From positions 12,028,001-12,092,000 of the forward strand of contig OZ365111.1 of assembly GCA_977030845.1 (NCBI GenBank): 64,000 nucleotides of DNA, in the 5' to 3' direction. The stretch's first letter is position 1. Every line of letters starts with the position of its first letter. Positions 25,101 through 58,000 of the stretch are shown here, piece by piece. The DNA is from Fimbriosthenelais zetlandica. Taxonomy: Eukaryota. Both the position numbers and the translations under genes were made by a program. The notes below the pieces were generated by a model. It ran no database searches. It was not told the DNA's origin and was given only the letters and a program-made list of their open reading frames with translations.

Positions 25101-27216
25101 AGACCTACCTTGTCAACTTGAAATTAATAAAGATAACATCCAAATCCGAGACATAGAAATCCCTACAAAGAGAAAAAAGATGCGATCAGGAACAAGTTAT
25201 CACAAAATAGAGCACAGAAAGTTGGGATTTGTATAACTGAATGGAGGCTTAGGAGGCTACTCATTCGGACCATTTGAGGTTCCAATGTAATTCTCCTCAA
25301 TGGACTGAACTTGTGAAGTGACGTTAGTAGTTAGTACACTACCAATTTGTTTTTACACGGGATTTACTCGGAGCTGAAAAGATTTTTCAGAGCACCGTAC
25401 CCGGTATAGGTAATGTCTCTCACAATATTTTAACTAGCTCTTACGTTGAAGTAAGTTCTGATTTGTATTCAAACTGTATACACTGAATAATATTAGTAAA
25501 CCATTATAAGCCGTTCATTATAATCACTGAATCAGTCATGGGTTCACTGGGTCAGAGGAGGTCGGCGTTTAATATTAAGCCTTACTACATTGTCTATTAA
25601 TTTCCTTCATATTTAAAGTCTTAAAGATTGTTATGTCGTCTAAAAATAGATCTATGGAAAATCAGGATTATATCAAAGTATGCCTGATTCATGTCTATTT
25701 AAGATGGATTAAGCCATGCAGTGGTTTTCTAACACTGCCAGGTCCATGGTCACGCACGGCCAAGCAAGGTATGTTAAGAATGCTCCTCACATTTATAAAC
25801 AATCGCCCTCAGCAGCAGCGCGATTAGTAGTGCTCACATTATACTAGGTCTGTCTATGGGATATAAGGTAGAGAGAGGGAAGCAGGTAGAACAGGCACTT
25901 ATCAATCCCTCAACCTTTCTCTTAGACTCAGTCAAGACAACCAAAACATTCCCCTTGACTTTTTATATTGAAAAGATGGAAACAATTTCAAGCTTGTCTG
26001 GGCAGAGTCTAGAAGGGAAAATGACCTGCAGAGATTATTGCCTGAGTAGCCTATAGGAAGAGGGATTTCCAGGTAGTAATATAGGGATTTCTAGATTTAC
26101 CGGTGTATTACTACGGTATCGGTACCGGAAGCATTATTTAAATGCCCTGTAGGATTCTATAGATTTTTTATTTATTAATTAGGCCTACCGGTAGGTATTA
26201 AGTTTTTTAATGGGTTGGGGGATGATTGATCCAGTCAGAGAAAAGATTATGTCTGAGGAAAAATAAATTCCCTGGACTAGACAGGGAGGAGCTAAATAAG
26301 GTGAAGACCTGGACTCACTAAAATTAATGACCTAGCCTAATGTGTAGTCATAGGCCTCGTGAAAACCTAATTTCCATTTAGGATTCTTACTACCGGTACC
26401 TAGGCCTAGGCCTATCTAGGCCTATAGATATGCCTAGTATAGTGTTACCTATACTGGTCTTATAGGCCTTGGCCTCTAGATAATCCGCAATGTTTCAATT
26501 AATATTTGAACAATCTAGGGCCTTGAGGGTTATAGTACGTCTACCGTACAGGTACTCAATTATTAGATATTAATTTAAGCCTACATGCCTAGGGCTGATA
26601 GTGATAGGGCCTACATTGAATTTGAAGATTATGCCTAATTTTGTAGGCCTACCGGGTAGCCTACTAGTAACGTGTGTTGTTACTAATAGTAAATACTATC
26701 TGAGGCGAGCACATTCCCTCAGACTCGGTCCTGATGTCACTGACACTGTGTATTGACATAGACCACTATTATCAAATACCGATAGGTCTACTGGAGAAGC
26801 ATCAAGCATGCCATGAGCTGCCTATGATTAGGCTACGGTATCATTCATAGACATGACATAGAGGCCTAACTAAATTTATCAGCACGTGCTTTGGTCGACT
26901 GGGTTCCAACGTTTTCATCCCGATAAGGAAACCCACTCTAAATATGGCTAAAGACGTTATTAGTCAGTAAGCCTACTGCAGTGACTGAGTAGTGAGTGTC
27001 AAAGCAAGTCCCACCCTCCTCCTCCCCCGCCTCCTTTCTCAACGGCAAGGAGTAGAGGCAGCCCCCGACCGGTCCCACGAAACCTGTCACACTCGACCGC
27101 CATCAGTGAACCCCCCACAAAAACCAAAACATTTCACCACTTCCTCGTTGTCAGTGTCATTAGAGACCTACCACTGAAGCTCCAGAGCTGACCTGAACTA
27201 AGATAACAAGTCCTAC

Positions 27217-27325
27217 CTTTTGGTTCGCTGTTTTTGGAAAGTGTATCCCTAAGTGGTTAACTTGTGAGTGCCAGCGTTGGGCGACTTTTTCAAACTGTGT
27301 CACTTACAATCCAAGATGGCGGCAT
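27217..27325 (-). other. Candidate non-coding first exon of the spectrin gene (distal promoter)
   Basis: Minus-strand donor AAAAG|GTAGGA at 27215-27216 directly below a CpG-richer patch with YY1 and CTCF motifs. The spectrin acceptor at 4360 needs an upstream exon. The 5' boundary is approximate. Confidence 0.4.
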
Positions 27326-27353
27326 GTTCAGTGACCATTGCGCCCCCTGGCAG
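27312..27353. promoter_or_regulatory. YY1 motif (CAAGATGGCGGC) plus CTCF-like motif (reverse complement CTGCCAGGGGGCGC)
   Basis: Close matches to the established YY1 and CTCF core consensus inside a patch free of TAGGCCTA. Confidence 0.6.
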
Positions 27354-27599
27354 AAGTGGCCGACACTCAAGGCTTGGTCAGCGCATCGAGACCAGCGCAA
27401 CGTGTGGCAAATGGAGGCCTAATGCCTAAGGGCCGCCTTCTCCCTTACCTTAGGCTTTTTTTATCTGAACGTTTGGGGTTTTCCCCCACCTTAGCCTAGG
27501 CCTAGCCTTGTCCTACCTAAGTTTTCCCATGGCGCCTTGACATGATAAGTCAAGTCAGGTCAAAATTAGTAGGCCTAACGTTAGGCCTACCGGTGTAAA

Positions 27600-27860
27600 C
27601 GCCCGAAAACACTCCCCCTAAAAAACACTCCCCCGTGTTTTGAGCCTTGAGGCTAGCCTCAGAACACTGGGGAGTCTTTTGAGCCTAGCCTCAAAACACA
27701 CAACTTTTCAGCCCCATAACACTTACCCTAGCCCCAAAACATTCCCCATCTTGACAATTGTAGCCTAGAGTCTTTTGAGGCTAGCTTCAAATCACTCTAG
27801 ACACTTAGGCCTACCCTAGCCCCAAAACACTCCCCATCCAAAAATTGCAATTGGAGTGTT
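27600..27860. repeat. Degenerate internal repeats (AAAACACTCCCC / CCTAGCCCCAAAAC / TTTGAG.CTAGC)
   Basis: Several imperfect copies of these sub-units in direct and inverted orientation. Confidence 0.7.
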
Positions 27861-27880
27861 GGAACTCCTACACCGGTACC

Positions 27881-27964
27881 GTAGGCCTAGACATTGAGCT
27901 GAGACATAAAAATTAGTAGGCCTAGACATTGAGCTTAGACATAAAAATTAGTTGACATTGAGCT
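27881..27964. repeat. 35-bp tandem repeat x2.4, with a further related copy at about 28105-28130
   Basis: GTAGGCCTAGACATTGAGCT.AGACATAAAAATTA twice, then GTTGACATTGAGCT. Confidence 0.9.
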
Positions 27965-28139
27965 AATAGCGATTTCCTCACTTAAAACAGCTGGGAACTT
28001 TACCAAAACTTACCATAGTAGGCCTACAGGTGAGATGTTTCCTTATTGGAATCCATCCTGTCTCTTCAGAGTCATTGCCAGTTTTTGAGATTCAGCAACA
28101 CAAACAAATTAGTAGACATGGAGCTAATAGTAGGCCTAA

Positions 28140-28240
28140 TACCGAGTTAAGGCGTTGAACTCCCAGTACCGGTACAAGGTTCATGCCAATGTGGTTCGAT
28201 TCCTAGCATGGACTAGGTTTTTCACTTCTTTTCCAACTGT
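28140..28240 (+). mobile_element. tRNA-derived SINE-like copy (same family as 17872-17990)
   Basis: TTAAGGCGTTGAACTCCCAG...GGTTCGATTCC (B box)...TTTTCCAACTG. Confidence 0.55.
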
Positions 28241-28246
28241 GCTAAT

Positions 28247-28426
28247 AAGAGGTTAAACCACGAGTGAAACGAGTTTAACCTCTTTATACCACGACTGAAT
28301 TTTTTTTTTTCATACCAATCAATAGTTCACAAATAGGCTAGTGTAATTCGATTCCCTTTTCCTTGTATTGATACAAAATGACTACAAGGAGAAATTAAAC
28401 TTCGGAGTCGTCGTCGTGGTATAAAG
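28247..28426. mobile_element. Small element with a 12-bp-stem hairpin followed by 14-bp inverted repeats (HINE/Helentron-like architecture)
   Basis: AAGAGGTTAAAC-cacgagtgaaacga-GTTTAACCTCTT hairpin (28247-28283); CTTTATACCACGAC (about 28282) versus GTCGTGGTATAAAG (about 28413-28426). Confidence 0.45.
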
Positions 28427-29625
28427 TGTCACTACCCCTCTCTTGTAAAACAATTTGTTATAGCCTACATCTGCTCAATCATAGCAGATTCAGTGGCCGA
28501 GGAGACGGCAAACATCGAGGGCGTTGACAGGACTAGGCCTACCGGTACCAGATTTCTGGTTGAAATCGACACAAGATTACATTGTTGGATTGTTCTTTAA
28601 ATTGTATTCCAGTTCTACACATAGCCCTACATGTATGAACGATTTAACGTTAGGACCTAGGCCTAATCAAGGTTTGTCATAGGCCAACCATAGGCCTATA
28701 GTAGGAGGGCCAAATCCCGCGTACTGTCGCTGTGAACTTCATTGCGCGCTCACTGCAGAAAATCTGTCACTGTGTCTAGCAACGCTAGTCGCGGTAATGT
28801 CTATAGTGGCTTATATTTAGAGTTGTTTTGACACACTATAATTGCTTTAAATAGTTTCATTGTACAGACAACATGTTGCCGGTCATTTTGATACCAGGCT
28901 TTATGGGAATGAGATGATTAAAAACAAGTCTGTACTATGTTGAAAAATAGCGAACTTTGAGGGTCTGTTTTTCGATGTTATAACAATTTGCCAAAAAACG
29001 CAGAAGTTTATGAGAACCAGTAATATGTTATTGACCACATGTGGAAGTTTGGTATATCTAGTGTGTTTTAAAAAAGTAATATGAGTTGGGATCTAACTCA
29101 ATGGCCATTGCCATGCTACCCTAGTCAGTGTATGCACCTGGCCCTCGGTAGGCCTACGCGCATAGCAGCGATGAGGCTACTGGTCACCTACTTCCCCACT
29201 GCCCAAGTGTGGACACATTTTCTGCAGGAATAAACATGGATATACAGAGTTCTCAATGTAGTAATTTGGGCTAACGTTTGGGGTTATATCTCAAGAACGG
29301 AGTGTGATATAAACTTCATTTAAAAAGCATTAAGCATAGTGTCAACTCGTTTATGAGAAGAGACCTTCAAATCAGTTCAATGTTGAAATTTTTTTTAATT
29401 GTGGCCTCCCTACCTATAGATTTAGTATAACTGGATGGACCACGTCACCTACCATAGGCCTACCGACTAGTTGGCGGCAGGCTATAGGCCTAGGCTAGTA
29501 AGCATAAGGCCTAAAAAAACACCCTTGCCTCCTACCATCAATGTGGATAAGTACCTAGGCATGCTTAATTGGATTACAGGACTGTATCCATTCTAATGCA
29601 TAGCTAGGTAATGATCCACATTGAC

Positions 29626-29654
29626 ACTAGGTGGCAGTGGTGCTGCCACCTAGT
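29626..29654. promoter_or_regulatory. Inverted pair of CTCF-like cores forming a 12-bp stem
   Basis: ACTAGGTGGCAG-tggtg-CTGCCACCTAGT; each arm resembles the CTCF core CAcYAGGTGGCAG. Confidence 0.45.
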
Positions 29655-29980
29655 AAGCAATGGGCGATTCGTTATCCAGCCACACTTAGACTGCTGTAGG
29701 CCTATATAGGCTAGTCCAAGTATGGCTAAATAATGATTATTTGATCATCTGAAGGGAAGAGTTTTTGACATATAATTCTTTAATTGTTTATTCTCATTCA
29801 TTATAAATTTATTGTCATTTTCTATTCATTAACACAAATTCATACTCTCATAGGACCCCCTCCACCCGGGAACCCCCCTATAGGCCTAGTGCATAGAAGT
29901 GTCCGGCTCACGCTCGCGGACGGACTCCCAATAACCCCGGTGAGTCAAAAGGGGGGTCGTTTTAAGTTGTTTAAATTTAT

Positions 29981-41785: not shown

Positions 41786-42019
<234 letters not shown>

Positions 42020-44538: not shown

Positions 44539-46350
44539 CTGGAAAAACAAAAGGTTACATCAAATTCATATTACCAATAATTACTCCGGAAAAAATAGAT
44601 TTTCCAAAGGATTTTGGCCCTTATATGACTGCCACTGTATTATCGAATAGTAGAGTTCATTGCATATACAAGTAAAATCAATTTTCAAAACATGATATAC
44701 TATTCGCAGAAAAAGAACAAATACATTTAAACTTTTCTAACTGAGAGTGTCTTTATCAAAGCAAATATTTATACATTGAATTGCAAATATATATATTCAG
44801 CCATTTTTGAAATTACTAAATTTTACCAGAAGATGATAAAATAACGCTAGACCTCCCTGCACTAAAGAGTTGAGAGGCGTGTGGATGAAGTAATACTATC
44901 TCATCGTTACCAAGGGTGAAAACCTTTCACCGCGCTGGGCAACATATTCTCATGTATTATTCACACCTAGTCATAAAGGTGCCTGGGGCTTACTAAATAT
45001 ACTGAGAATACCTGCCTAAATAACGCTTACATAATGTAATTGCTCCCGAATGTAATGTGAGGAGGGTAAAAGGCCAGGTTAAATTGGTATTAAAGTAGCG
45101 AGTTATAACAGGGGAGGGAACAATGCTGAGCCGGCGAGGGAAATGCAGGACAAGTCAGACTTTATGGCCATTCCTAATTCATTTAACATCGCAATTATAG
45201 ATTAGGAGTGAGTAATTTCACATCACTCTGCAATAAATGTCTCGTATAACTCATGAGGAAGGAAGGTTTGCCACAGGTGAAACTGGGACGTTTACAGGGA
45301 ATAGGCTTAATTACTATTTCCTGAAAGCCTTTAGAGTTTCTGATGTAAAAAAAAAATCATAACGGATTTAAGTGTGGGTTTTTTAAAAATGGGATTAGCT
45401 TTTAGAGATTCTAATTTGTTTAAATTTAAGCTTTACCGTTGGATTGATGTGTTTTTTTAAATAGGAAAGCCTGCATATGGGTAAATCTTACTGAAATCCG
45501 GTGATTTTTGTTAAATTCCTTTAAGGGACACCTGGGCAGCAGCCCGGCAGCTTTTATTCTATTTGCCATAACCAATCCAGAGACCTTATACAAGCAGACC
45601 TTATAATCTCAGCACTGTTAAAAGTACAAAGTTCTAACAAAGAACACTGGTGTATTATTACGTAACACCTAAATGAAACACACCTGTTGTGAAAAGAACT
45701 TTGTTTATATAGCCAAGTCTTGCATATCTTTTCCTTCAATATGTGTAAGCTACCAGAATGTAATATAAATGTACGTAAGAGATAATTGTCATAGCAAACG
45801 GCCAATAGAACGGAGTCAACAAGCTTTTATGTCGCCACTAAGTAGGCAACCATATGGCGTTGAGAGCAATATGGAGAGCTCATACCAATTTCACCCTGAC
45901 CTAACATACATTTTTTCCCTAAGGTTTTTTAACTCATAAATTAATCAATCAGGCCACGTCATTGATAAAGATATTCTGTCCAAGAATAATAACCTATTTA
46001 AGGGAGCATTCAATGCTTAATAGGTAAAAGTAGATAGAATCAAAATGGTCAATACCTTTGAACAATGTAGCCAAAGCTTTCATGTTTTATCAGACCATGG
46101 ATCAAACGTTGTCAGTACATTGATCAAGATATGGTGGGAGGGGGGGGGGGGGGGGGGTGGGGGAGTGGGGGAGGTGAACTCTTTGGCCTCAGAGCATTAA
46201 TTTCATGTGCAGAATGTCAATTCAACTTACCACCTGGTGCAAGATTCAACAGCAAAAATAAACTGACGTTTCTGTACTTAGTCTTTTTGTACAAGTTTTA
46301 ACCTTTTTTCAGGTTTTATTAGTAAATTTTCAAATTGGATAATAAACTTA

Positions 46351-46512
<162 letters not shown>

Positions 46513-46923: not shown

Positions 46924-47728
46924 GAGGTAAATATTCATGGACGTGCCACGGTTGTGTGTTTGAGCAGGACAGGTGGGCGTCATGAAGGGAGAGTGCTATA
47001 TACAAAGCTGTATTAGATATGTGTCAACCTAGGCTATACATAGACATTAATCATTATTTTTACCTGCCATTAAAATTGGGTTTTGCGTATATTGATTCAA
47101 TCAAGCAAATTGATTCAATTCAAGCCTAAAACAACTATAGGGCCTATTATGGTACCCTTTCAAGATTTTTCTTAATATGGAAGGACTTTAGATTCCTTAA
47201 TTAATATTTTAAATATCGACTTGAAGTCATTCCAATATAATTTTGGCCCGCAGCTTCTAGGTTTAACTCAAGGCCCTGCAATATGCTCCTGAAGTACTAG
47301 CCGGATTGAACATGTCAGAGTGCTCGTTACAATACATAGATGCAGGACACTAGAGATTTTCTGCAAGAGCAGAACATATTGGCGGAAATCATCCATTTCC
47401 ATGTGATAAAGCACCGAGTCATTGTATAGAGATTCTTATACAACACATATGTCCCTAAACTCTACTATAGTTAGTCTTTAGATCTAAGATTCTTGGAAGG
47501 CCATTTATTTTAACACTCGAAAGTGTCCTGCAATGTTTATACCCCGACAGATCGTGGAAATATTATATATCATTATATGGAATATGGTAACTTAGGAAAG
47601 TACTAATGGATGGAGTTTGTAGGCATCCAGAGTATATATCAGAAAGTGTTCAGGAAGGAGGTCTGTGGAGCGGCCGGGGGGATATAAAGTGGATAGAACC
47701 TTCATTTGGCCAAGGCCATGTCTTTCTA

Positions 47729-48685
47729 CAGTGGAACCTCGCTATCCGGCCACCTCACTTTACCGGCCACCTCGCTATGTGGCCAGAAAAAGCCCAGTCC
47801 CGAATTTGTTCCCTCTATATCATGTTTAATTCTTATTCAATAAAACGGCCACTCACTAAACCGGCCACCTCGCGTTATGGCCGGCATTTCATGGACAAAC
47901 AAAGGATTTACATCTCACTAAACCGGCCATGGTGACCAGAGGAGCAGACATTTCTTTGATGATGTAACAGCACGGCGCGACTGGGGGGCCGACGCCGAGT
48001 CTGAGGGGCGGATTAAATCATTAAAACTACATGTAGATAGCCCTGAATACACACATTCACCCCCTACCCCTTACCAGCAGGCATGATCATAGCCTCATTA
48101 ATGGTTTTCAAAACGACCTTTAATTCAGGCACTTTGCTGATGAAATCAAAGAAATGTTCTCATAATTTATTTAGCCATTTCACACTAAACCATCGAATCT
48201 AAACAAAGTTAATCGTAGCTTGACTCATATGTCTTCTGCGTGGGTAAATTTGAGTAAATGTTCTGTATGTGGTGTTTTATTTTAAATTTTGCCTTGATCT
48301 GATCTATTAACAGAAATTTATTCACAACTTAGGCCAATTTATGGGACAAATCGTGGCTGTCGGTAGGCGAAACCACCATAACGGGCCGGTGATGAAGCCC
48401 TACCAGGTCTATCAGTGGGAGAAACCACCAAAAAAGCACATTTTATTTATTTATAGAATAAAAATTGTTGGTTTCCTTTAAACAAGACCTGATCGTCCCT
48501 ATTTTATTATGAAAAGAGATGAGTATACCGGTAGTGTAAACATTGCGCATTTGGTGGTCAGCAATCTAATGACCAATATGGTTGTGTAGGCTATCGGGCA
48601 ACTGTACCTCACCAAACCGGCCATCTCGCTATCCGGCCAGAAAAGGCTCAGTCCCAATGGTGGCCGGATTAGTGAGGTTCCACTG
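47729..48685. mobile_element. 957-bp non-autonomous Tc1/mariner(pogo)-type DNA transposon in CDKL1 intron 1
   Basis: TA|CAGTGGAACCTCGCTATCCGGCCACC ... GGTGGCCGGATTAGTGAGGTTCCACTG|TA: ~26-bp TIRs, TA target duplication, subterminal CCGGCCA(C/T)CTCG repeats, no transposase ORF. Confidence 0.9.
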
Positions 48686-50942
48686 TATCTAGATGCGTCT
48701 GATAGACACGAGCTATCGAATCAATAAGCTTGATATGGAGGGAGTGAATTTCTCCTAAATCCTAATGCTTTCTATTTCCAAACCCCATAGATTTGATGTA
48801 TAGACATCGATCCCAGAAAATGTACTTGATGACCTTAGCTAGGGTAAAAAGGAAAAGAAGAATGTCTCGCCTAGTTTCCTCCCCCAGACACAGGCGAAAG
48901 CTGACCGCCTAGAGAGCTACATTGTTGTTTGACAAAAGAACCTAGAATCATTGTCCCCACATATATACCGTAATAACATAATCTTTTACACAATTTAGTA
49001 ATCAGGAAATGTATTACAAAGCAAGACGGGATCAAGGGATTTCCATCCTTGTTTTCAACATAAAGCCTCAATGAATAATCTAAGAAATGATCCCTTGGAT
49101 GAAGATTAAAGAATTCATAATCGCCCACTCGTTTTGTTTTCTGTGGTGGTGGGATATTTTCTAGTTTTTTAAGGCAAACTGGCGGGGTTATAGATAGAGG
49201 ATAGCTAAGTCATGAGACCTACAATATTTCTGAAAGTTGTAATTTAGTTGATCGATTCCCGGAGTCTGTCTTTGGCGCATTTCCCATTCACCATGTGAAT
49301 GATGTGCAAGCTTCACTTTATAGCTGAGCAGCGCTCGGAGAGTTACTAACAACAATCTAAATAAAATAAAATGATGACAATAAATCTGTATGGATTTACA
49401 GCCACCAACAATGCTGTGTGAATGTATGAAGCTTTCTTTACTAAACAAAAATATTTCCTTTCTTAAGAGTTAACTTCACAAGAGATTCCAGGTTCAGGGT
49501 ATAATTTACCTGGTATCGCACCGCATTTTGCGACTCAATTTGATGTATTTGCAATACAAAATCAAATTGGCATTTTGCGATGAATACAAATTATCTGCAT
49601 TCTTCAGGTGGCAAAGGAGAAATTGCGATGCAAAATCGCTTGATTGGATTCTGATTGCTATGCAAAATCAACTTGCATAGCAAATTTTTCCAATAGCAAT
49701 TTTTTTAAACCAAAATATAGGCCTATCCTGAGGTTAGGGAATTGGAGATGTACTCTGTATGCTAGTAATAATAAATAGAGTGCATGTACTAATATCTAGA
49801 TATTTCTCGGTAATTACAAGGTAGACGTTGCAATGGATGGTAATCTCCTTACATCATGTTACAATATAGTGGGTAGACCGGAAAGCAGGGAGCCTGGATT
49901 AAAGTAGGGACACACTGTGGGCCCCTATACCATTTCGCATAAATGTATAGACAAAAATAATCTTGATGAAATCCGGATGATTCAACAGTAAATAACGATC
50001 AAATGTACTTTGATGTGGGCTTTCTATAATAACCAAACAATTTAACTAGCGGAGCAATGAGTAGGTACGGTACGTTTAATCTTAGACAGTTCCTTAAAAT
50101 TGAAGACAAATGTAGGGGGTGTAGGGGGTTGGGGGTTGGCCGGGGGAGAGATGCTGTGAGAAATTAAAACTATTAGTAGCAGGGAGGAAAGGACTCAGGA
50201 GCTAAGAGAGGACTAATATGAACAGGAAACATGTTTTCCACCACTTCTGCAGGCTAGCTATTAGTGTCAAATACTTATGTATGGAATGCAACTAGAATCC
50301 TAATCCTAGGCTCGGGCAAGCTCAGTCATAACTCAGCTTAAGGTTGCTTGAATAAACATATTAGATTCTCCAAATAAATTAATTAAACAGAAATGACAAA
50401 ATTACATTTTCTTTATATATATTTCTCGCAAACCATTGATATTAACTGTAAATGTAGGCTTTCCTTTTTTTATTGTAACAATGTCAATGAAATTTTTCAA
50501 CTCTAATCTGCTCGAGATCTTTTTTTTAATGAATAAAATCGATAATTTAATGAGTGGTTTTATAAATATATGTGTGAAACTCATTCAATCGTACAGGACA
50601 CGAAGCATACTGCATGCAATATTGAGGGAAATCCACTGGAGCGTACTAACTACATGTATGAATTATTTAGTGGGAATAGCTAATCAATTTAAAGTGATAT
50701 AATGGAACACGCGTGTTTGGAGGGGAAAAAAATAAATATGGCAACCATCTTGCTTCTAATCTAGGCCCGTTAGGCCTACATAGAAATAGCCTACATTTTG
50801 AAATTGATCAAAAGCCAATAGCCTAATTCATAGACATAGGCCATGTTCTATGCCTAGGCTATGGGTATTTTTATTGTTAATTTCCGAAAAGGGATTTATA
50901 GATCTAGTAGAGGCTTAACTGGTAGATAGATCTATAGATCTA

Positions 50943-51179
<237 letters not shown>

Positions 51180-52070: not shown

Positions 52071-52649
52071 CTTTACACACACGGTCTACAGGCAGCCAGT
52101 CACTGTGGACGCTTTACATGCTTTCTATATAATATGTGGAGTAGGCATGTAGACTAGATAGGACTATTAATTACCTAAAATAGTAGTCCGTACATATAAA
52201 TAACTAGATATTAAAATATACATTATTTATAACCTAGGGCTAGGCATCGGTTGTTGTTTTTATAGAAAGCATCCTGACTAATATTAGTAGGTTGGTAGGG
52301 CCTAGGAATAGGCCTAGGCATAGTCATAGATGCTGATTCAGCATAAATCTAGCCTAGATAACAGGCCTAGTTATGCCTAGAATAGATGAAACCAGTAGCC
52401 TATAATTGATTCCAAGGTAGGCCTACCGGTAAGAATCGGAATATTAAGCCACTTAGGCAGTAGCCTAACATTATGGCTTAGGCTATGCCTTAGGCCTACT
52501 AGGCCCTAGCCTAGGCCTACTGATATGATTCAAAAAGGCTTCTAGAGCCATAGAAGCTAAGAGGCCTAAATAGATGATTCTATTTGGTGCTGCTACCTTG
52601 TGCGTCGCCAGTGAACTGAGCTCCTCCGCGCCTTTACTTCAGACGGAAA

Positions 52650-52664
52650 CCACCAGGTGGCAGC
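52650..52664 (+). promoter_or_regulatory. CTCF-like motif
   Basis: CCACCAGGTGGCAGC, near-canonical CTCF core. Confidence 0.6.
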
Positions 52665-52734
52665 TCTGTTAGTATTAGGTCTATGGTCGCCACCATCAGC
52701 TGAGTGCCCAAGCATCCGGTTATCTGAGGCGTGG

Positions 52735-52814
52735 CACACTCCGCATAGTGGCGCTCCAGTCGTTCCTCCTTAGAAGAAGGGAGGAACGACTGGAGCGCCA
52801 CTGTGCGGAGTGTG
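52735..52814. other. 80-bp GC-rich foldback (35-bp stem, 10-nt loop)
   Basis: CACACTCCGCATAGTGGCGCTCCAGTCGTTCCTCC-ttagaagaag-GGAGGAACGACTGGAGCGCCACTGTGCGGAGTGTG; the single mismatch is a G:U-compatible pair. Confidence 0.9.
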
Positions 52815-53529
52815 GAGGCGTGGTTTACTAATTTGTGAACTAACTTAGCAAGAATACTAGCCTAGGCCTATGTTTCCTCTTTTTAGGCCTATGTCCATGA
52901 ATTATATTTTCCAAATTTCACGAGGCTAGACCTAGGCCTAAAATCATCCCTTCAATTTTTTTTTTTTTTTAGTTAGATTTTTATAGGCCTAGGGCCTAGA
53001 GCCTGTTATGGGTGAATAGGCCTACCAGTAGGCTACCAGCTTGCACTCTTGATTAGGCCTACTCAAGTTTCTCGTATGATTTTCAGCTGGGGGCTCTTTC
53101 TATGCATAGGCTATGTGCATTAGGCCTAGGCCTACTACATTGCCTTGTGTGAGATGGATATTTCTAGGTGCATGTGGTAGATAGAACATAGGCCTATTAG
53201 TTAGGCCTAGCCTATATGCATAACCTTGAGGAGGGAGGCATTGGAAAAAACAACTGAGCTAACTCCCCTCCTTTCGATGGCATAGGCCTAGGTCTGACAT
53301 GTTGGGATCATGGCTCCATAGGCCTAGCCTACTAGCCTAGTTTTACCCGCTTTGCCGGCTACAGTCTATTCGCTCTAAGTTGATCCGAAACTACAGTAGG
53401 CCTACATATGTAGGCTATGGTGGTTTCGGATCAACTTAGAGTGAACAGACTGTACATAGGTGGCTTGCAGTAGGCCTAGGCCTAGTGGTGCCCTGAGGTC
53501 ACCATTTGGTAGCGTGCTAATAATGTCAT

Positions 53530-53589
53530 CCGGAAGCGTCTGACCGGAAACGACTACCGACCAATCAGAACAGAGAACCAGGTGGCGCT
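53530..53589. promoter_or_regulatory. Promoter-like core: two ETS sites, CCAAT box, CTCF-like motif
   Basis: CCGGAAG (53530), ACCGGAAA (53543), CCAATCAG (53561), CCAGGTGGCGCT (about 53578) in a CpG-richer patch. Confidence 0.55.
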
Positions 53590-54460
53590 CTTTGCACGAG
53601 GCCATTTCTTCACGAATCTCGGAAAAGTTGGATTAGGCTAAGCGAAGTCTCAAGATCACCCAAGACACAATTTTGATCGACGATCGATATCCTGAGCGCC
53701 GAGAAGACGCCTACCAACTTGGCAACTTTCGCTTTGCAACTTCAACTTGGCAGTAAAGTGGAGTAAACACCTTGCACGATTGTAGCAGGACGCGTTCAAA
53801 ACATCCTTCCTCGCCAATGTTATTAGGCCCTACCAACCAATGTGTCGAAAATGGATAGGCCTAGGCCTAATTCATTCTATTGATACTTAAACGTCACTAT
53901 GGACATAGTTTTAACTGCAGGAAGTGTGAGGGACGAGTTGAATTTGAGGAGCGGAAAGTGCCATGAAATCATCCCATGATTATGATAGGCCCTAGTGATT
54001 GTCTCCTTCGTGGTTCATCACGTCATTGTTGTTTATTCAACCACAAATCGCCAAGAATACATTGAGTGACTGAGCCATCTGACGCTATCGTACCGGTTCT
54101 GCATCAAACTGTAAGTATAGTTCGTAGGCCTATAGTTATCTGTAGGCCTAGGCTACACATTGTTTTCACTTTTATAAGAATCTTATAGTTATAGGCCTAC
54201 GGTGTTTACGAGAGTGGGAGACTTCTGAGAGATCTAATATTGTTTGGAGTTGATAATTATATTTTATCTAGGCCTATGTAGGCCTACAATCTGTAATTCA
54301 TTATAGAGTGATAACAGTTTGAGACATAGGCCTATATTCCTCTAGACGGAGTATCTGTCCCGGTGAGGAAGACGAGGCTTGTTTACAGGCTAATATTCCT
54401 CCAGCCATGTGTGTACAGGACCGCTGTGCGGTGGCAGCACTGTAGCCACTGATATACCTA

Positions 54461-55077
54461 GGCCTGCTGCATGTGAGATACAAATTGGGCTTTTCTAGGA
54501 AATTATAGGGCATATGCCAGCCAGGTATATTAGGACGGCATATTTTGAAGAAATTCAAATAAGTGAGTTGGCCTAATTAGGCCTAATTATCTATAGAATA
54601 TGGAAACAACTGACGCGCATAGGTCTATGCTGGCTGGCTGGGCAATGCGCCCTCTATGTGCGCTCATCTAAATCCGTTACCCTGATTGCACCCCATACAA
54701 GTACCCCACCACAGGCAAAAGTGGAAACTAACGCTCAATGGTAGGCCTGTGTCAATGGGAGAAAGCTTCTCGCCTCTCAAGATATTCAGCATGGACTCCA
54801 TAATGAAATGTATATGCAGGTAGGCCTAGATAAACCATTCATCTAGGCTTCGTCTAGGCTTATTCACTATTTAAAAAAACAATTTTGACTCCATTGAACT
54901 TTTGCCATTGTATTAGATTGTTTCCATATTCTATAGATAATTAATTAGGCTAACTCACTTATTTGGATTTCTTCAAAATATGCCGTCCTAATCTACCTGC
55001 CTAGCATATATGCCTAAGGATTAGACCTTATATCATTTCCTAGAAAAGACCAATTTGTATCTCACATGCAGCAGGCC
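54461..55077. mobile_element. ~620-bp foldback element with ~150-bp diverged inverted arms, bounded by TA|GGCC...GGCC|TA
   Basis: Left arm 54461-54610 aligns with the reverse complement of 54917-55077 (GGCCTGCTGCATGTGAGATACAAATTGG...TTCTAGGAAAT...TTAGGACGGCATATTTTGAAGAAAT.CAAATAAGTGAGTT...ATCTATAGAATATGGAAACAA). Confidence 0.75.
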
Positions 55078-58000
55078 TAGGCCTAATTGAGTGAATAGAC
55101 CCAGGCCTATGATTGCCTGCCTATATTTGATTTTGATAGCACCTTAATGAGTGAATGACCTTCTAGCCCTGATGACCCCCGTGTGACCTTCAGTCGGGGT
55201 GTAGGTCAGAATGTCTGGTATGTCTCACAGACAGTGACCGGTCACTCATCCCCCGCACTTCACCTGTTTTTCAGACACAAGTGTCTGGGTCCATATTTAA
55301 AGTTAGCGAAGTTATTTTTTAGCAGAAAAAAGGGCGTATCATAAAAATAATTAATAGGCCTATTATTGTATGTCAAATTAGCATAGCCCTATGTAAGCCT
55401 AAAGAAAAAAGGTGAAGAAAATAAAAACATATGTAAAAAGTATGTACATGTACCTGTGCATTGGCCAAGAGGAATTGACTTGTGGGTCCAAGTATTTAGA
55501 ATGTTGCCAGACTGCCACTTAGAGTAGGCTTACTTCCTCTATAGGCCTCGGAGTAGTCCTATTGGATACATTACAGGATTTACGGTTATGATCAACCTCT
55601 AATAGTCCTAATATTGAATCCCAAACTATTCATTCAAGGATCCCTACAATATTATTTGTTCAAAGTGAAGATGGAAAAACGATAGAAATATTCATCAATT
55701 TGTATGTGTTTATAGTATATTGGGTTGTCTTTCATCTATTTTTTTTAATGAAAATAACAGTTCTGCCCAACCCTATACTTGAACAAGATCCCATCCCCAT
55801 TATACCAAGCACTCCCCCCCCCCCATCCCAACCCCGCGCCACCCGTCCGCGTATTTTCCGGAACGTCCATTTACACTTCCATCACTTGTGGTCAATAATT
55901 GATGATCATAGGTCAATATTCGAGTTTGTACCACAAGAACTGTGTACTACCTATTGACCCATAGACCTTCCGTTACCTAATTTTGGAGTATTTAAAAAAA
56001 TTCTGAAACAGCCCCCTGGGTCTCGTGAATAGCATCGTTCAAGGGTCCTCCCAGCATTCCAACTTTTAATTTGGGTGGCAATGCAAGTAAAGTCAATTCA
56101 AAATTGAAAATTTCAATAATCTTGAAGAATGTATAGTAAATATTGTGAAATCCTTTTGATTAAATCTCTTGAGTTTTATCCTATATAGTTTATGACTCTT
56201 GAACCATCATCAAGATAATTATACATGTCATCCATCAATGTCAATGTCATTCATTACGTAATCTTTCAACCCCATATAAATGCGGTAACCACAGACACAC
56301 TGTTAATGAGATGAGCTGCACTGGTGTTCATTTTGGGTGAATGAATGGGTCCATAGAAAATGAACACATGGCAATTGAACTCGGTGCTGACTTCTGCTTT
56401 TGAAAAGTGTACACAACTTGATTGATTTTGCAGAGATGTAACCTAATATTAAGCCGACAGTTATAGAATCCATTGGCTTTTATCGAGTGTCCTTTTATTT
56501 CCAACCTTCTCCTCTGTGACCCTTTCCACTCTCCCAAGCCAAAGGTATGACTCATTCAAAGCTTGGGGTGAATGCATTGAGTGGTCTCGTTCAGCACCCC
56601 CTTGATTTACATTAAAAATATGTAGTTTTCAAAAAACCACTTAAAATTCACAAAAATATCGCGGCGGTGCATCCTGTTGAATATTTTTTGGGTGTGATTT
56701 ACAGTAATTCTATAATTCCACAAATGAACCGGGTGCGATGACACACACAAATCCACCTGTCTATACCCCTCCGCTTGACTAATAGTTCAATCCATTGCCA
56801 TGTCTCTCAGTGAAGTGGGTCGGTCCATTGAAGGTGAAGGGGGAGACTAGTGGGTCAGTCAGCGCCGGCACACCACATTTCATGTCCCCAGGTCCGGAGT
56901 ACCAGACATACCCACACCTCGTGTGTACAAATTTCGCGGGAATATTTCAGAATTTGGATACTGTCATCTTCTGAACTCGTCTGATAACTATCTCGGTGAC
57001 CTTCTCCCGTTCTAGATGTGAGTATATTTTCATTTAACTTGCTTAGAAAACAACATGAAGAGGCAATACACAATTTCTTGATGACCCTCTGTAGATACCA
57101 TGCCCAGTTCAAAATCTAATCGTTCTAATCCCGTTTTACAAGCCTTTCTCAATCAAATATCGAACTAGTTGAATGAAAACTGTTAATATTTTTCTCCTTT
57201 GGGACACTGACTTCAGTTTAGCGTGAAAAAAGTACATCAATCTTGGTTATGAGGCCCACGCTTTGACTTTCTTTGAATGAATGGAGGGAAGCATGAAAGG
57301 CGTTTCACTATAACTAGGTGGCTTGTAGTAGGGAACACAGATGGTGATTACATTGGTACTGGACAGCTGGGGTGGGGATTGGGGAGAGGGGGTATGGGAA
57401 AGGTAGAGGGAGAGGCGGGTATGGGGAATAAGGTAGAGGGGGAGGGGGGCTTGTACCAGACAGCGGAGACTGGGTCGTACTAGAGAGAGGGTGAATGTTT
57501 TATACCTCCCGCTGCATATCACACCCCCAAGGTAATATTTCATTTAAAATTTTCTTCTAAATTATCGTTGTTAAATTTGAGCCTTGAGGTGGTGGATGAT
57601 TATTTTTATTCACTTCACTACCAGCAGATGTTTTGTGGCGGGATGATGCTCTAATGATGACTTGGAGAGGTTCCGGAATCAATGTTGATTCTACATGATG
57701 ATTCATAAATTAGGAATCCTAGCGAGCTAGCCTTAATGTGATGATTGTGTCTGTAATATAATGAAAACTATTTCTAAAATTGGCAAATATTCAGCCGTCT
57801 TATCTGTGAGTTGCACCAAAAATAAGGAAAATATTGGGATCTATAACATTATCACTTCCTCTATTGACATTATGATAATATTATATTTGCGGTGCATCCT
57901 ATGACCAACGGTGTTTTATTCTAAGCTAACATTTGAGCAATATATTATTTAGTGGAGTATATTTCAATATACAAAATTGTCATTGAAGGGAAATCCAGGA

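Follow-up and report, generated by a model that had tools for sequence, protein, structure and literature searches.

Elements of the Tc1/mariner superfamily insert at TA, and when they excise and the break is sealed by end-joining, a footprint is left between the two copies of the TA duplication; that of Sleeping Beauty consists of 3 nt plus TA, with two alternative centre bases (PMC2874221). Here we describe a field of short palindromic units, chiefly the octamer TAGGCCTA, at positions 52280-55560 of a 64,000-nt window of contig OZ365111.1 from Fimbriosthenelais zetlandica, which probably represents an accumulation of such footprints around the candidate promoter of a CDKL1-like kinase gene. 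The likeness to Tc1/mariner elements (Tc1 and Tc3 in C. elegans, and Sleeping Beauty) lies in insertion at TA, in the duplicated TA and in the few terminal bases kept between the TAs, and the two alternative centres of Sleeping Beauty are mirrored by the forms TAGGCTA and TAGCCTA of the field. Unlike in those systems, the main unit of the field is 4 nt plus TA with a self-complementary core, and up to 39% of the TAs in the promoter flank are occupied. The footprint of Minos, 6 bp made up of four terminal nucleotides plus TA, agrees in its net gain of 6 bp and in the order TA, four bases, TA; the four bases of Minos, however, are not self-complementary and give rise to two alternative scars, whereas GGCC would give a single product.

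Two further systems share single traits with the field. The DNA replication-related element (DRE, TATCGATA), bound by DREF at fly housekeeping promoters, is likewise an eight-letter TA...TA palindrome concentrated at promoters, but it occurs as a few sites near the start site, whereas the field has dozens of sites that fill TAs at random, frequent length variants and insertion polymorphism. The termini of mPing and other PIF-Harbinger elements begin with GGCC or GG, and these elements have a strong preference for landing just upstream of genes; mPing excises precisely. Products of the TAGGCCTTA type are not enriched. In the PIF/Harbinger-ISL2EU (PHIS) superfamily, termini that start with GG or AG are reported, but the duplications of PIF-Harbinger elements are TWA (3 bp) and those of ISL2EU are AT, with ANT, CWG and TNA also in use among PHIS groups, against TA in the field (PMC4482050), and a PHIS parent was set aside on this ground. 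KolobokP (PMC9587614) was set aside as a candidate parent because its target duplication differs.

A palindrome field beside a kinase gene

The window, which contains no N, holds 80 copies of AGGCCT, compared with 12.8 ± 3.7 (maximum 23) under dinucleotide-preserving shuffles. A first-pass annotation made from the sequence had described 52280-55560 as a second, denser palindrome field, with about 38 AGGCCT in 3.3 kb and frequent forms one base short or one base long, and our counts bear out this description: the stretch contains exactly 38 copies (11.6 per kb; the first field, at 26180-29890, has 7.0 per kb), 31 of which lie within the full octamer TAGGCCTA, together with 15 one-short forms (TAGCCTA, n=8; TAGGCTA, n=7) and five one-long forms (TAGGGCCTA, n=2; TAGGCCCTA, n=3). 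Given the density outside both fields, a stretch of this length is expected to hold 0.63 octamers, 0.58 seven-letter forms and 0.06 nine-letter forms. GGCC that is not part of AGGCCT occurs eight times in the field, with about seven expected; it stays at background, and the excess is therefore specific to the TA-flanked form. Across the window, TAGGCCTA is the most over-represented octamer (63 copies, about 1.6 expected), and 52 of these copies fall within the two fields. The palindrome field is real and far above chance. The next octamers in rank, TACCGGTA (12 copies, 0.4 expected) and TACATGTA (18 copies, 2.2 expected), are also palindromes of the form TA-NN-N'N'-TA; they are scattered window-wide (e.g. 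13666, 15469), and the GGCC family is the only promoter-bound palindrome family in the window.

The field belongs to the flank of a predicted kinase gene on the minus strand, whose first coding exon is listed in Table 1 and further exons of which align at 46346-46475 and 41810-42015; this order places the field on the 5' side of the gene. Within the field, a CpG-rich island poor in motifs separates two densely occupied blocks. CpG observed/expected is only 0.08-0.6 around the island, which, to judge from its composition and CCAAT box, is a candidate core promoter of the kinase gene. The motif domain is sharply bounded, with borders near 52290 and 55360, and the adjoining flanks are free of units. 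Rfam and transfer RNA scans of 48-60 kb of the window returned no matches, and the longest open reading frame (ORF) in the window has at most 152 codons' worth of residues (≤152 aa). Within the two largest motif-free gaps of the field are two stretches, at 52650-52664 (ccaccaggtggcagc) and 53578-53589 (ccaggtggcgct), that may resemble the CTCF core motif.

Table 1. Features of the window referred to in the text (positions count from the first letter of the window; TAs are those present before insertion of the units)
Feature	Start	End	Strand	Description
First field, used as replicate	26180	29890		Octamer 21 : seven-letter 9 : nine-letter 1; 12 point variants; 3 shared TAs vs 2.9 simulated
Element with Tc1-like ends	47727	48687		961 bp; ends TA-CAGTGGAACCTCGCTA...TAGTGAGGTTCCACTG-TA; no long ORF
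First coding exon, CDKL1-like kinase gene	50988	51158	-	Protein kinase domain; within ORF 50940-51176
Left flank outside field	51177	52279		0 units / 90 original TAs
Palindrome field	52280	55560		51 units of TA + (GGCC, GGC, GCC, GGGCC or GGCCC) + TA: 31 octamers, 15 seven-letter, 5 nine-letter
Densest block	52290	53484		34 units / 88 original TAs (39% occupied); between CpG-rich island and kinase first coding exon
Compound string	52500	52519		TAGGCCCTAGCCTAGGCCTA; nine-, seven- and eight-letter units with shared TAs
Hairpin element	52726	52823		80-bp hairpin (52735-52814) flanked by 9-bp direct duplication GAGGCGTGG
Tc1-like hairpin	53360	53454		95 bp; ends TA-CAGTC...GACTG-TA; TAGGCCTA in one arm, TAGGCTA at mirror position in the other
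Motif-poor CpG-rich island	53485	53823		CpG observed/expected 1.22; 1 unit / 12 TAs; CCAAT box 53561-53565
Second dense block, far side of island	53824	54340		11 units / 42 original TAs (26%)
Field remainder	54341	55560		5 units / 108 original TAs
Foldback	54459	55079		621 bp including flanking TAs; arms about 150 bp, 93-96% complementary; ends TA-GGCCTGCTGCATG...CATGCAGCAGGCC-TA
Filled/empty pair	54580	54585		GGCCTA in left arm of foldback; matching right-arm TA (54942-54943) empty
Right flank outside field	55561	57500		0 units / 130 original TAs

Independent hits at TA and a narrow variant spectrum

The units share TAs about as often as random insertion would have them do. When all 51 units were removed and 51 sequential insertions were placed at random TAs, 8.5 ± 2.5 shared-TA junctions resulted, compared with 10 observed; the corresponding values for the first field are given in Table 1, with a standard deviation of 1.5 for the simulation, and placement that ignores TAs would by a rough estimate yield fewer than one. 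The units thus hit available TAs independently, fitting random use of TAs. They form 41 runs, of which 32 are single, eight double and one triple, and six of the nine compound strings join units of unequal length. The mixing of unit lengths, as in TAGGCCCTAGCCTAGGCCTA, indicates independent hits and not slippage of one unit. A target preference is seen in the bases next to the TA: hit TAs favour the context G-TA-C, with C at the first outward position in 34% of cases against 17% at unhit TAs (p = 2e-5), and occupancy ranges from 33% for GTAC to 5% for ATAA. Beyond ±1 the flanks of the units carry no signal, and when the window was compared with itself no repeat family that contains the motif came up. 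The motif thus does not belong to a longer repeat, as it would inside a short interspersed nuclear element (SINE) or a miniature inverted-repeat transposable element (MITE). Compound strings also form across palindrome families through shared TAs, namely TAGGCCTAACGTTAGGCCTA at 27570-27589 and TAGGCCTACCGGTA three times (26180, 28534 and 52418); the CCGG form adjoins the GGCC form more often than we would have guessed, in numbers too small to test.

An excision footprint should appear as a short insertion between two copies of TA where a related sequence has an empty TA, and this arrangement was found twice: between the two arms of a foldback element in the field (Table 1) and between two haplotypes of another species. 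The latter are haplotigs of one ENA assembly (L005 and L006). Each has five octamers at the kinase locus, where 0.19 would be expected (p about 2e-6), and four of the five lie upstream of exon 1. At one TA the haplotypes differ by the presence or absence of exactly GGCCTA (TAGCTAGGCCTACATGG in L005, TAGCTACATGG in L006), and the neighbouring motif differs by one substitution. L005 (4336-4345) also has one extra TA directly beside TAGGCCTA relative to L006 (3934-3941; TGTATAGGCCTA versus TGTAGGCCTA), which could be a variable target duplication at the scar or simple TA slippage. Among about six motif sites the haplotypes show a 6-bp indel, a TA indel next to a motif and a single substitution, a level of variation similar to that of the surrounding sequence. 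The motif therefore occurs in more than one lineage and is polymorphic in one of them.

The exon-1 peptide, used as the query of a protein word search, gave no copy from the same species or from a close relative. The nearest kinase exons returned are only 74-79% identical in DNA, which makes the compared species distant, and no synteny of the neighbouring gene was seen between L005 and the window. TAGGCCTA is absent from the flank of the gene in four species (L001, 9.4 kb; L002, 6.8 kb; L007, 2.7 kb; L008/L009, 20 kb each). Given this absence and the polymorphism between the haplotypes, the motif is not a conserved part of the control region of the gene. Two other features of these flanks were noted. 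About 0.4-0.6 kb upstream of exon 1, L005 (9590-9666, 77 bp) and L006 (9400-9634, about 235 bp) carry unrelated sequence, a structural polymorphism adjoining the scars; the L006 version includes two of the three TAGGCTA that L006 has in excess, and one arm of a local inverted repeat, and the third lies a little farther downstream, in an insertion of 16 bp. In another species (L008, 1800-2358), repeats of about 43 bp form a tandem array upstream of this gene.

The lengths of the cores are tightly distributed, with 15 units of 3 nt, 31 of 4 nt and five of 5 nt, and none of 2 nt or 6 nt; strings with two-nucleotide cores do not exceed chance (TAGGTA/TACCTA, 1 against 1.6 expected; TAGCTA, 0 against 1.2 expected), and ten-letter forms do not occur in the field. 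The field contains 20 length variants with G/C cores, or 39% of units, and 19 one-substitution variants, the latter scattered across all motif positions. Set against the 31 intact octamers, the 19 point variants correspond to decay by about 0.08 substitutions per site on average, in agreement with the 4-12% arm divergence of local inverted repeats. The neutral ratio was taken from the haplotypes L005 and L006, which are 97% identical and differ by 37 one-base indels and 392 substitutions; against this ratio, 20 length variants among 39 variant units are far too many (binomial p = 7e-12). Length variants are too common to be products of decay alone, and the short and long forms are therefore mostly primary products. 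The first field repeats these proportions (Table 1), and in the TACCGGTA family the one-short satellites TACCGTA and TACGGTA number 13 against 3.3 expected. A narrow spectrum of junction variants is what end-joining should leave, and the 15/31/5 distribution of cores and the 20:19 ratio of length to point variants are of this kind.

These data bear on the interpretation offered by the first-pass annotation, which had preferred a repair product to a fixed binding site. This preference is upheld by length variants that are as common as point variants, by the tight cores and by the filled and empty TAs. The outcome it had named as contrary, variants arising only by secondary mutation of conserved octamers together with motifs conserved in position across species, was not what we found, given that secondary mutation alone does not explain the spectrum, that several other species lack the motif in the flank of this gene and that the haplotypes of one species differ in it. 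Its further suggestion that the forms with three Gs point to a parent family with GGG...CCC ends is not supported: the symmetric long product TAGGGCCCTA has no copy in the window or in any of the fetched loci, and each of the seven one-long variants has an asymmetric core (3+2 or 2+3), the outcome to be expected if a single base is added at the junction.

Transposon ends in the fields

One element of the field has ends that match the units. The foldback at 54459-55079 terminates in TA-GGCC...GGCC-TA, and this correspondence between scar bases and terminal bases was observed on one element only. A scan for inverted-repeat elements of the form TA-GG...CC-TA returned the foldback and otherwise weak or chance pairs, such as a pair of 10-14 nt in L005/L006 without extension. 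By its ends, the foldback is a candidate relic of the parent transposon, and we treat it as a lead and not as proof.

A parallel is offered by a second family whose parents are visible. Two elements with TA-CAGT ends, the hairpin at 53360-53454 and the 961-bp element at 47727-48687, which is probably a deleted Tc1-like copy, co-occur in the window with the matching palindrome TACATGTA, enriched about eightfold, although some copies of TACATGTA sit in small tandem repeats. On the evidence of their ends, these elements and TACATGTA appear to follow the same scar logic. A further hairpin (52735-52814), flanked by a 9-bp duplication, is a second, unrelated DNA-transposon insertion in the field. 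The three inverted repeats within 52280-55560, the foldback and the two hairpins of unrelated end types, belong to a wider pattern: the window has about nine short-range inverted repeats, and five of them are inside the two fields, which make up 11% of the window length. Independently of the motif, the fields thus serve DNA transposons as landing zones.

Probable excision scars and competing explanations

We consider it probable, at roughly 0.58, that the field consists of scars left by end-joining after excision of a cut-and-paste transposon that targets TA and has a preference for promoter flanks. Such a transposon, with ends GG(CC)...(GG)CC, would insert at TA and duplicate it, landing repeatedly within roughly 1.5 kb on either side of the promoter, presumably guided by the chromatin of the promoter flank, and would then excise. 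On excision, a few bases from the ends of the element would stay on the flanks as 3' overhangs, to be sealed by end-joining. Because GGCC pairs with itself, one annealing register would be favoured and would give TA-GGCC-TA, a net gain of 6 bp; TAGGCTA or TAGCCTA would come from a register shortened by one base or from the trimming of one base, and one extra filled-in base would give TAGGGCCTA or TAGGCCCTA. Every scar would add a TA, and later hits would therefore build compound strings. The stagger of the cut may be of either of two lengths. With ends GGC...GCC and three-base 3' overhangs, the two-base GC/GC register would be perfect and would yield TAGGCCTA after a one-base fill-in on each strand, while the three-base register would contain a central G:G mismatch, resolved to TAGGCTA or TAGCCTA; with four-base overhangs, GGCC would self-anneal and be ligated directly. 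One dominant scar with a narrow spread of ±1 is expected from either overhang length.

Several points weigh against this interpretation. Neither a multi-copy parent family nor a transposase was found, the foldback is single-copy in the window, and a metagenome scan with its terminal repeat gave no matches. The ends of the foldback can also be read as a TGCTG...CAGCA element inside a GGCC duplication; under either reading its empty site would look motif-like. Both filled/empty pairs are unpolarised by an outgroup, so that a deletion of 6 bp between two TAs is possible in those two cases. The hairpin at 53360-53454 has an octamer and a seven-letter form at mirror positions; a later change of 1 bp may account for the difference, but at such occupancy two separate hits are also plausible. 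Finally, known Tc1/mariner elements show, to our knowledge, little promoter preference, and an occupancy of 39% of TAs demands a very active family. The activity needed can be estimated: 39% of TAs hit over the time of about 0.08 substitutions per site would imply a scar rate per TA of a few times the substitution rate per base, and with some 10^6 promoter-flank TAs per genome this would amount to roughly 0.004-0.04 scar-forming events per gamete per generation, which would be within the range of active transposon families.

If the field does consist of excision scars, the consequences would reach beyond this locus. Excision scars are usually viewed as rare by-products; in the present case they would be a major source of mutations, uniform in sequence, that remodels 1-2 kb around promoters, filling up to 39% of TAs, raising local G+C and creating many identical palindromes. 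Scar density would then be a fossil map of germ-line chromatin reachable by the transposon, the variant spectrum a natural read-out of end-joining in an animal without genetics, and the parent, a promoter-seeking and TA-inserting transposon, would be of interest as a tool. A full-text literature search found no description of such scar fields; the variant-spectrum test, the statistics of TA occupancy, the rejection of a GGG...CCC parent, the candidate parent, and the cross-species and haplotype evidence are new here.

The strongest competitor, which we nevertheless regard as unlikely, is a homotypic cluster of binding sites for a palindrome-recognising factor, comparable to the DRE of fly promoters, maintained or multiplied by selection and possibly derived from scars that were later co-opted. 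Such a cluster would fit the grouping of perfect palindromes to either side of a candidate promoter. It would also call for conserved positions, constraint and constant length, whereas 39% of the units here are length variants, and variants that break the site by changing its length are as common as point variants. The TAs are saturated at random and not at set positions, and the sites are sparse in the CpG-rich core itself, though this core has only 12 TAs. Absence of the motif from the same flank in the four other sampled species, and motif sites that differ between L005 and L006 about as freely as the surrounding sequence, also speak against selection for binding.

Slightly less probable still is a process that writes six letters other than by ordinary excision, such as a domesticated or promoter-tethered nuclease or integrase that leaves GGCC at TA breaks, or the insertion of very short palindromic DNA. 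The missing parent family and transposase would be accounted for, as would the extreme density of the domain and its sharp limits around a promoter, and several TA-NN-N'N'-TA palindromes do co-occur and abut (TAGGCCTACCGGTA three times, TAGGCCTAACGTTAGGCCTA). The ±1 spectrum, the TA duplication and an element with matching ends are, however, predictions of excision followed by end-joining, the TA-CAGT elements and TACATGTA follow the same logic with identified parents, and we know of no mechanism that writes a fixed tetranucleotide without a template. In its most explicit form, to which we assign the same low standing, a promoter-tethered and possibly host-kept cut-and-join system would stamp six self-complementary letters at a TA on each visit; the fields would then be a heritable record of promoters open in the germ line and would provide the host with dozens of identical palindromic sites for possible use.

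It is very unlikely that the octamer is the preferred target and not the product, with elements of the TGCTG...CAGCA type inserting into GGCC and duplicating it. The ends of the foldback permit this reading, and its right flank continues with another GGCCTA, but the origin of the motif and the filled and empty TA sites would be left unexplained. We know of no superfamily with a GGCC-specific 4-bp duplication, and the duplications of the PHIS groups are those listed at the outset (AT, TWA, ANT, CWG or TNA; PMC4482050). Scarcely credible is a degenerate (GGCCTA)n microsatellite spread by replication slippage: Tandem Repeats Finder reports short period-6 stretches (e.g. 53471-53485) and three TAGGCCTAGGCCTA strings occur in the field, but head-to-tail arrays are excluded by the run structure, in which 32 of 41 runs are single units and none exceeds three, by the mixed lengths in six of nine compound strings and by the spread of the units over 3.3 kb with unrelated spacers.

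Two other origins were considered and rejected. A head-to-head telomere repeat (TTAGG/CCTAA) is contradicted by a shortage of A in the first flanking base as read outward (T ahead of the motif, A behind it). A hairpin or P-nucleotide origin of the hAT-like kind disagrees with the constant core and with an empty site that consists of plain TA. Outside the field, the window also contains impure poly-G tracts at 2285-2316 (32 bases) and 46136-46171 (36 bases).

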